This document shows, in pieces, positions 1,646-2,063 of a stretch of 64,000 bases of DNA. The stretch comes from Pavona decussata (Eukaryota). Every line of letters begins with the position of its first letter. Within the stretch, counting starts at the first letter, position 1. The stretch is taken from assembly GCA_977016875.1 (NCBI GenBank), contig CDRNST010000035.1, positions 1,116,001-1,180,000 of the forward strand. The letters are read 5' to 3'. The notes beneath the pieces were generated by a model. It had not been told where the DNA came from and did not search any database. It saw only the letters and a program-made list of their open reading frames with translations. The position numbers were made by a program, and so were the translations under genes.

Positions 1646-2063
1646 AGTTTCAATTTCGAGTAATGGGCGCGACAGTTAAGAAAATAGGGCATTGTCCCTT
1701 TAATTTCGATAGTTCAAACAACAGTAAGGCACGTCACCAATATGATGAATATTAATAACTTGCACACTTCCTAGAAAACACCGATTGAAACCGGAAGTGG
1801 AGCTACACAAGGTAAATTACGGTTACTTCACCGCTTGCTTAATTGGTTCCGTTGAGAAATAATAACTGATCTGTAGTAGAAAATACATATTTATGACCTA
1901 AAAATAAGAGGTGAAAGTAACTGTTTCGAAATTTCAATTGGTTTCGCTATGACATGAATAAAAAGTGAAAATTATTTGGGCGTTTTCTGAGAATTCGACC
2001 TAAGTTTCCGGGAATTCCCCTTACGCATTAAGTCCGGAAAAGTCTACACATGCGGCTATATAA
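1646..2063 (+). promoter_or_regulatory. RLR-A promoter: ISRE, GAS sites, overlapping GAS/NF-kB site, TATA box
   Basis: AGTTTCAATTTC 1646-1657 (ISRE consensus AGTTTCNNTTTC); TTCCTAGAA 1768-1776; AAAAGTGAAA 1961-1970; TTCTGAGAA 1985-1993; TTCCGGGAA 2006-2014 overlapping the palindromic GGGAATTCCC 2010-2019; TATATAA 2057-2063, ~95 bp before the ATG. An extra GAAAGTGAAA lies at 2499-2508 in intron 1. Confidence 0.7.

Follow-up and report, generated by a model that had tools for sequence, protein, structure and literature searches.

Two tandem genes for RIG-I-like receptors (RLRs) in the stony coral Pavona decussata carry a promoter architecture that recurs in the RLR promoters of other corals. 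The genes, here called A and B, lie in a 64-kb stretch of contig CDRNST010000035.1 (hereafter the window; G000:C35:1116001-1180000, G000 being our label for this 602-Mb genome). Sequence comparison makes it near certain that a proximal module is under constraint, consisting of a gamma-activated site (GAS), a second GAS overlapping an NF-kB (kB) site, a TATA box, and an initiator (Inr) at fixed spacing, and that the same holds for a distal block containing an interferon-stimulated response element (ISRE). With moderate confidence, we go further and read these regions as inducible promoters resembling those of interferon-stimulated genes (ISGs), with STAT, NF-kB, and IRF as the factors involved.

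Architecture of the two promoters

Each gene begins with an exon that encodes a RIG-I-type CARD (PF16739), a domain present in every homolog of gene A exon 1. Exon 1 of gene B is 72% identical to that of gene A in amino acids and is followed by GT at 25252. The closest named relative of exon 1 is a record from Acropora digitifera, and some sequencing runs that contain a small part of the window's words bear the label coral metagenome. The initial annotation had suspected a non-vertebrate source, and the DNA is indeed that of a stony coral. The features of the two promoters and first exons are listed below in window coordinates, with distances in nucleotides (nt); L-numbers are our labels for loci.

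Gene A
1625–1682, plus strand: distal conserved block, with a 14-nt near-palindrome TGCTTAGGCAAGCA and then the ISRE, 83% identical to 24466–24523
1646–1657, minus strand: ISRE core, GAAATTGAAACT (motif scan)
1768–1776, no strand assigned: distal GAS-type site TTCCTAGAA (motif scan)
1791–1798, plus strand: ETS-type site CCGGAAGT, kept in L009 and A. digitifera (L014), absent from gene B
1961–1970, plus strand: AAAAGTGAAA, similar to positive regulatory domain I (PRDI) and IRF sites, kept in L009 and nearly so in L017
1985–1993, no strand assigned: proximal GAS-type site 1, TTCTGAGAA, a conserved island that starts 21 nt before site 2
2006–2020, no strand assigned: composite site 2, GAS TTCCGGGAA overlapping kB GGGAATTCCC(C), a conserved island
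2057–2063, plus strand: TATA box TATATAA, a conserved island in the cross-coral alignment
2086–2092, plus strand: initiator TCATTTG, with +1 predicted at 2088 from the spacing to TATA
2079–2436, plus strand: exon 1 with 5' untranslated region (UTR), ATG at 2157, and CARD, from RNA contigs that continue in exon 2 at 7862 and leave the intron uncovered

Gene B
24205–24229, minus strand: further-upstream pair of GAAANNGAAA sites (motif scan)
24466–24523, plus strand: distal conserved block with ISRE core at 24489–24498 (GAAAGTGAAA, minus strand), kept in L013 and L010/L011
24597–24605, no strand assigned: distal GAS-type site TTCTAGGAA, positional counterpart of 1768–1776
24769–24777, no strand assigned: second GAS-type site TTCTAGGAA (motif scan)
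24827–24841, no strand assigned: composite site 2, GAS TTCTGGGAA overlapping kB (GGGGTATTCC, minus strand; motif scan)
24881–24887, plus strand: TATA box (string match, alignment)
24910–24916, plus strand: initiator TCATTTG, with +1 predicted at 24912, at the same 31-nt spacing as in gene A
24972–25251, plus strand: coding part of exon 1 (CARD), ATG at 24972, exon end by homology to gene A

The strings quoted in the initial annotation, and the common order of the elements in A and B, were all found as described, including the overlapping STAT/NF-kB composite about 50 nt upstream of TATATAA in both promoters. GAS and kB share bases at 2006–2020 in gene A (TTCCGGGAATTCCC at 2006–2019) and at 24827–24841 in gene B (TTCTGGGAATACCC at 24827–24840; the gene B composite is identical in L012). 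The kB of gene A, GGGAATTCCC, is an NF-kB consensus within about 100 nt of the start, lying 69–78 nt before the predicted +1. At the position homologous to site 1 of gene A (24804–24812), gene B has the degenerate sequence TTGCGGGAA. The clustering of these sites is well above the background of the window: TTCNNNGAA occurs three times in the 300-nt proximal promoter of each gene, as compared with 0.15 expected from dinucleotide shuffles of the window, and two of the five places in 64 kb that match GGGRNWYYCC are the composite sites of A and B.

Downstream of the composite, GGCTATATAA stands at 2054–2063 in gene A and at 24878–24887 in gene B. The TATA box is followed about 30 nt later by an initiator matching TCAKTY, which is the arrangement of a focused core promoter with TATA plus Inr. 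The spacing is kept: the initiator A lies 31 nt past the start of TATA in nine of 12 TATA-bearing promoters (A, B, and seven other lineages) and 32 nt past it in one more.

RNA evidence for gene A comes from Logan contigs of four runs in three studies, placed on positions 1201–3200. These contigs cover exon 1 and not the intron, and past 2436 they are joined to sequence at 7862; therefore the runs are RNA and intron 1 spans 2437–7861. A contig of 1050 nt begins at 2079, which is 22 nt past the first T of TATA; the predicted initiator A, at 2088, follows 9 nt later. Since contigs cannot fix 5' ends, this beginning is consistent with a TATA-directed start and is no proof of one. Low-depth contigs also lie over 1449–1831 and 1896–2231. 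The elements are proximal to a TATA/Inr start, and the RNA contigs roughly agree.

The distal block contains an ISRE in both genes, as had been claimed; the start coordinate of the initial annotation, 1646, cuts the block, which begins at 1625. Cores of the form GAAANNGAAA(CT) are found near the start of gene A (1646–1657) and of gene B (24489–24498, plus four more within 700 nt). The window holds 17 occurrences of GAAANNGAAA, with 8.8 expected from dinucleotide shuffles; five are within 700 nt upstream of the TATA box of gene B and one is in the distal block of gene A. For the first part of the block, segments 1625–1645 and 24466–24486 are the sole matches in the window at two or fewer mismatches, and none of 100 shuffles gave any. 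This part includes a near-palindrome, TGCTTAG(G/T)CAAGCA, at 1627–1640 and 24468–24481, which precedes the ISRE by 7–8 nt; most related corals retain its GCTTAG half. The near-palindrome resembles a dimeric site, possibly of the bZIP type, and matched no verifiable consensus. A perfect GAAAGTGAAA is also present at 2499–2508, 63 nt inside intron 1 of gene A, and intron 1 of gene B showed no counterpart.

Two further elements lie between the distal block and the proximal module. AAAAGTGAAA is present in both promoters and, as the initial annotation had it, is inverted in gene B (reverse complement at 24731–24740); its conservation is confined to the close relatives of each paralog. The ETS-type site was noted above. 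In A. digitifera, at about -342 from the ATG, CCGGAAGT runs into GAAACT to give GGAAGTGAAACT, which has the form of an ETS-IRF composite element.

Conservation between paralogs and among corals

When the region of gene A is compared with that of gene B by blastn, the exons and two non-coding pieces align and nothing else does; the introns are unalignable. The first non-coding piece pairs 1625–1682 with 24466–24523 (83% over 58 nt, E = 1.4e-10) between unalignable flanks. The second runs from the TATA box through the 5' UTR into exon 1. Between the paralogs, synonymous divergence (dS) is saturated, at 1.0 for exon 1 and 2.4 for the large exon. Saturated dS together with unalignable introns implies that neutral DNA has been randomised since the duplication, and thus the remaining similarity reflects constraint rather than recent copying. 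The claim that the elements have been kept despite divergent intervening DNA holds in that the rest of the upstream DNA cannot be aligned between the paralogs.

A search for open reading frames (ORFs) similar to exon 1 yielded 54 in other coral assemblies. A tree of these puts A in one supported clade and B in another, and both clades contain orthologs from further assemblies. The promoter set used here comprises 13 sequences: the two in the window and 11 distinct ones from 13 fetched loci, among them A. digitifera and two Tara metagenome scaffolds. Little can be learned from close orthologs, whose identity is about 80% over the whole length; distant ones align solely in islands. Between -240 and the ATG, an alignment of 11 sequences has a mean column identity of 48%, and the only stretches at 75% or above are site 1, site 2, TATA, and the initiator.

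Distant lineages have a common form, TTTTCCGGGAATTT, about 9 nt, then TTTCCGGGAATTTCCC, which is probably ancestral. It consists of a GAS-type palindrome about 22 nt upstream of a second one, and the 3' half of the latter doubles as the 5' half of a full kB site, GGGAATTTCC. Five lineages (L014, L016, L017, L019, and L064) have the 15-mer TTCCGGGAATTTCCC unchanged, and L018 has a one-base variant of it. Among the 13 promoters, site 2 contains a strict kB in 10, the second GAS (GAS-2) in 10, and both in eight; GAS-2 starts 50–55 nt before TATA in six. Site 1 retains TTCYNRGAA without GGGAA in gene A, L009, L018, L019, and L064. Farther upstream, about 280–330 nt before TATA, a counterpart of the distal GAS-type site is present in eight promoters (A, B, L009, L013, L014, L015, L016, and L017), and it has no kB half at all. 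The distal block is also traceable: TTTCAATTTC or a one-base variant stands at a comparable distance in L014, L015, L016, and L017, mostly about 20 nt after a conserved GCTTAG. L015 and L017 retain both GCTTAG and TTTCA.TTTC, L014 retains just TTTCA.TTTC, and L016 has a similar pair.

A third RLR paralog is present in the same genome (L060, G000:C200:3230284-3233553), with a CARD exon 67% identical to that of gene A; the genome contains six CARD_2 exons. Measured from its ATG, the L060 promoter has GAAAGTGAAA at -179, TTTCGTTTTC at -157, and a palindromic kB, GGGGATTCCCC, at -127. The distance of GGGGATTCCCC to the ATG is about the same as in the coral RLR module.

Motif content was compared between the -600 to -60 zones of 14 promoters, the third paralog included, and their own flanks, with the following results:

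TTCYNRGAA: 29 observed and 0.75 expected, 39-fold
kB: 11 observed and 0.37 expected, 29-fold
GAAANNGAAA: 24 observed and 4.0 expected, 6-fold

The 14 promoters are mutually related, so p-values from these counts overstate significance; the fold differences are still large. The palindromic YNR form accounts for 29 of 32 TTCNNNGAA sites in the zones and for six of 34 in the flanks. The initial annotation had named absence of the motifs from orthologs as grounds for giving up the idea; the elements are instead retained in orthologous coral promoters.

A variant of the composite is found in an RNA contig. In the contig over 1896–2231, the allele differs by an extra G after 2009 and by C2017T; it reads GGGGAATTTCC, which is still a kB site, and the spacing of the GAS changes from N3 to N4. 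This allele restores the probably ancestral kB form. Because of this allele, L013, and L065, it is evident that the kB half can persist without the GAS half.

Candidate factors, mechanism, and alternatives

Genes for the candidate factors were sought in the genome by profile search. Five IRF DNA-binding domains and two Rel-homology loci above the PF00554 cut-off were found, so that a Rel-homology factor is encoded. At the default threshold, PF02864 gave no STAT match in the genome. A relaxed search returned three collinear sub-threshold STAT_alpha/STAT_bind pieces on one contig and one strand within 4.2 kb, which are probably the small exons of one split STAT gene. Upstream of this probable STAT gene, a 10-kb stretch (L071, G000:C8:3604000-3613999) contains 13 TTCYNRGAA sites, with about one expected from the density in the flanks, and four of them lie within 500 nt near 3609046–3609547. 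The cluster may reflect STAT autoregulation or a compositional effect.

Four of the five IRF genes have GAAANNGAAA within 300 nt of the DNA-binding exon. One of the five, L067 (G000:C213:345800-352200, minus strand), has the same proximal grammar as the RLR genes: CCAAT, a sequence similar to the cyclic AMP response element (CRE), TGACGTCA, the GAS TTCTCGGAA, 5 nt, the kB GGGGGACTCCCC, about 28 nt, and TATAAA. An ISRE-like GAAAACGAAAC is located further upstream.

The mechanism we propose is as follows. The sites would be bound by NF-kB, by the single cnidarian STAT, and by at least one of the five IRFs, and a signal from nucleic-acid sensing would thereby increase transcription of the sensors' own genes. 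This would amount to a positive feedback resembling that of vertebrate RLRs, with no known interferon. The two GAS-type sites, about 21–22 nt or two helical turns apart, would face the same side of the DNA and may help STAT to bind cooperatively. There would be no room at the composite for an NF-kB dimer and a STAT dimer to seat fully together. The composite would most likely serve as a docking point for either input, feeding the nearby TATA, and not as a strict competitive switch. The distal elements would be the third GAS-type site and then, about 400 nt away, the ISRE block with its tandem IRF half-site.

Vertebrate RLR genes are ISGs whose promoters contain ISREs or IRF-binding elements (IRF-E), and neither an interferon nor ISGF3 (STAT1-STAT2-IRF9) is known in cnidarians. 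The coral genes are similar in that they would be sensor genes with IRF/STAT-type elements and, to judge from their motifs, positive feedback on sensing. They differ in their dominant conserved element, which is the proximal GAS/kB pair and not a proximal ISRE.

Induction of cnidarian RLR genes is documented. Nematostella RLRa and RLRb are induced by polyinosinic:polycytidylic acid (poly(I:C)) (PMC8476169) and Nematostella RLRs by 2'3'-cyclic GMP-AMP (cGAMP) (PMC8713801), and upstream fragments of RLRa and RLRb drive poly(I:C)- and heat-inducible reporters (PMC12530282; reporter line PMC13319465). Those fragments are, like the regions described here, upstream regions of homologous cnidarian RLR genes; unlike the present work, the two reporter papers contain no motif or binding-site analysis. 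The probe used for sea-anemone NF-kB in electrophoretic mobility shift assays, GGGAATTCCC (PMC5700166), is exactly the kB of gene A. Outside cnidarians, shrimp Vago is reported to be driven by IRF (PMC4602278), and a cGAS/STING-IRF axis is reported in oyster (PMC8218723). These circuits are likewise examples of IRF-type promoter control of antiviral genes outside vertebrates, but they concern other phyla and other targets, and no conserved GAS/kB composite is described in their abstracts. ISG-like induction without interferon is therefore not new, since it has been published for Nematostella (PMC8713801; PMC8476169), oyster, and shrimp. In the literature searched, we found no published motif dissection of cnidarian RLR promoters and no earlier description of the deeply conserved cis-architecture of coral RLR promoters.

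Composite GAS/kB elements are known from mammals. In the human IRF1 promoter (Pine 1997, Nucleic Acids Res 25:4346, via PMC6242948), as would be the case in coral judging from sequence alone, a GAS overlapped by kB near the start of an immune gene integrates STAT and NF-kB inputs, and the coral IRF gene L067 also has GAS, then kB, then TATA. Unlike in IRF1, the kB half of the coral site is a full consensus, a second GAS-type site lies about 22 nt upstream, and the genes are RLR genes of an animal without known interferon or a TNF/IFN-gamma pair. At the E-selectin promoter, STAT6 and NF-kB compete at overlapping sites (PMC6242948). The coral site has a similar overlap of GAS-type and kB sequences, so that both dimers would not be fully bound. 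The mammalian overlap results in repression by competition, whereas there is no sign of repression in coral, and the coral spacing is N3, which is bound by most STATs, and not the N4 preferred by STAT6.

The module is of interest because cnidarians mount an interferon-like response without interferon, and the factors that drive it are in question, single knockdowns of IRF and STAT having had no effect (PMC8713801). It names three candidate inputs, of which the GAS half, the kB half, and the ISRE are separately mutable, and thus offers a testable handle on how an interferon-less animal raises its antiviral sensors. It would also mean that the grammar of GAS overlapping kB known from human IRF1 is used in an early-branching animal.

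ISG-like positive feedback by IRF, STAT, and NF-kB, as suggested in the initial annotation, is plausible because the factor genes are encoded and sea-anemone RLR promoters are inducible by poly(I:C) (PMC12530282; PMC13319465). Several observations weigh against it. A motif match in this coral does not amount to occupancy. When each IRF and STAT were knocked down singly in Nematostella, cGAMP-induced genes were not lowered, and NF-kB was needed for a subset of genes, mainly antibacterial ones (PMC8713801). The module is not universal: a deletion has removed site 2 from L010/L011, the gene B ortholog; L013 and L065 keep kB with the GAS half lost (the TTC half in L013), L009 and L015 keep GAS with the kB half weakened or disturbed, the ISRE has one half-site broken in L009, a close gene A ortholog, and the third paralog L060 has neither GAS nor TATA in its promoter. 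A genome-wide search for the exact composite gave three matches and two for a control pattern, none with TATA and one inside a transposase-like ORF; the composite being no commoner than the control, no regulon is demonstrated. The start of gene A is located only roughly, one contig starting 9 nt before the predicted +1; the contig over 1896–2231 crosses TATA; and an upstream leader exon, described below, is also used according to one RNA contig.

An alternative view is that NF-kB alone is relevant. Constraint would then lie on the kB site, site 1 containing a weak half of one, and TTC...GAA would be a by-product of the GGGAA half and a T-rich flank. Retention of kB in L013 and L065, where the TTC half is lost, agrees with this view, as do the RNA-contig allele, which keeps kB (GGGGAATTTCC) at altered GAS spacing, the third paralog, which retains just kB and IRF sites, the GGGAAT at site 1 in several lineages that lost TTC (L014, L015), and the fact that, of the three factors, NF-kB alone gives a phenotype when knocked down in Nematostella (PMC8713801). 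It does not account for the five promoters in which site 1 has TTCYNRGAA without GGGAA (A, L009, L018, L019, and L064), for the third positional GAS-type site conserved about 300 nt upstream with no kB half, for the excess of the palindromic YNR form (29 of 32 sites in the zones, six of 34 in the flanks), or for L009 and L015, which retain GAS while kB spacing is disturbed; we consider it unlikely. The simplest reading of the composite is that its GAS and kB halves are both real and partly redundant. Either half can be lost across lineages, an observation that agrees equally well with two partly redundant inputs and with competition; a strict competitive switch at the overlap is unlikely, and the "competitive or switch-like logic" of the initial annotation is speculative. 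It is also improbable that the module sets cell-type-specific basal expression in immune-type cells, read by constitutive ETS, bZIP, and basal IRF/STAT. The ETS consensus and the near-palindromic bZIP-like element are conserved as well, RLRb sets apart a distinct population of cells in Nematostella even at baseline (PMC13319465), and RNA contigs from ordinary runs without known stimulation indicate expression. Yet TATA and Inr with clustered GAS, kB, and ISRE are the usual architecture of inducible genes, and sea-anemone RLR promoter fragments are near-silent at baseline and switch on after poly(I:C) (PMC12530282).

A different single factor could recognise the shared core TTCCGGGAAT(TT), with the likeness to GAS and kB being coincidental. 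The letters that do not vary among lineages are GG.AT in the centre and CC, and sites 1 and 2 share TTCCGGGAATTT in several lineages. No known family was matched, each half behaves as GAS or kB when the other is lost, and the cognate factor genes are encoded, all of which make such a factor very unlikely. Finally, the similarity could be non-functional and due to gene conversion, a shared transposable-element fragment, or chance. The first 21 nt of the distal block are within two to three letters of the body of a short interspersed nuclear element (SINE) derived from tRNA, and a family of miniature inverted-repeat transposable elements (MITE) carries tandem TTCCGGGAAT. But the SINE likeness ends after about 20 nt, in copies chosen for that very match, the MITE has nothing in common with the promoters beyond the motif, and conversion cannot explain retention in distant corals with unalignable flanks at saturated dS. 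The cross-species footprint effectively refutes this explanation, to which we give next to no weight.

A variant of the favoured ISG-like reading is that the GAS pair, which is retained about 50–75 nt before TATA in RLR genes across stony corals, serves a STAT-dependent second wave, in which an undiscovered secreted signal analogous to interferon activates the single cnidarian STAT, cooperating or alternating with NF-kB. We regard this as quite doubtful; if true, a loop from sensor to cytokine to STAT and back to sensor would predate vertebrate interferons.

Leader exon, neighbouring genes, and repeats

Gene A probably has an additional, minor start. In one RNA contig, a splice links upstream sequence that stops at about 206 with an acceptor inside exon 1, at about 2262 (2259–2262 in the window), and from this it follows that gene A probably also has a TATA-less upstream start, though the contig may begin in the 3' end of the upstream gene:

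1–206, plus strand: alternative upstream non-coding leader exon of gene A, with its end at 206 (one RNA contig)

The leader has stops in all three frames and is preceded by CCAAT/ATTGG boxes at 34, 66, 140, and 151, with no TATA. A product from it would be without the ATG and the first 35 codons of the CARD exon. Transcription starting elsewhere had been named as a ground for discarding the promoter assignment; the main form of gene A starts roughly at TATA/Inr, and it is the second, minor form that starts upstream.

Two CARD-only genes lie just upstream of the window (L061 and L062, G000:C35:1112671 and 1103198) and are 46% identical to the CARD of gene A. They are probably homologs of the sea-anemone CARDIB gene that adjoins RLRb. 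Within 900 nt before the ATG, neither has a GAS, an ISRE, or a kB near the start; L062 has one distal kB-like site at -386. In the sea anemone, the CARD-only neighbour of RLRb is reported to diverge from RLRb in expression after poly(I:C) (bioRxiv 10.1101/2025.11.22.689925), and the motif-free promoters of L061 and L062 fit this divergence.

Origins of the paralog similarity in transposable elements or in gene conversion were rejected. Exaptation of a SINE as the distal block fails in that the 13 genomic matches at two mismatches are all in the tRNA-derived SINE and align over about 20 nt at most. A transposable-element origin would call for repeat similarity beyond the motif, and what is found is about 20 nt of SINE and TTCCGGGAAT in the MITE. 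Gene conversion is ruled out by saturated dS, unalignable flanks, and cross-species retention. The SINE is present at L004, L005, L007, and other loci, and its body contains TTAGACAAGAAACT, which is two to three letters from the first 21 nt of the distal block.

A genome-wide search for the tandem GAS pattern, in which no gene annotation was used, gave 115 matches, nearly all in two repeat families, and none for the control. The MITE is about 330 bp long, with terminal inverted repeats that start with ACGGGGGGTGACAAC and internal TTCCGGGAA(T/A) repeats. It is found at L032, L035, L036, L046, L047, L052, and about 20 other places, and it thus spreads GAS-like sites around the genome.

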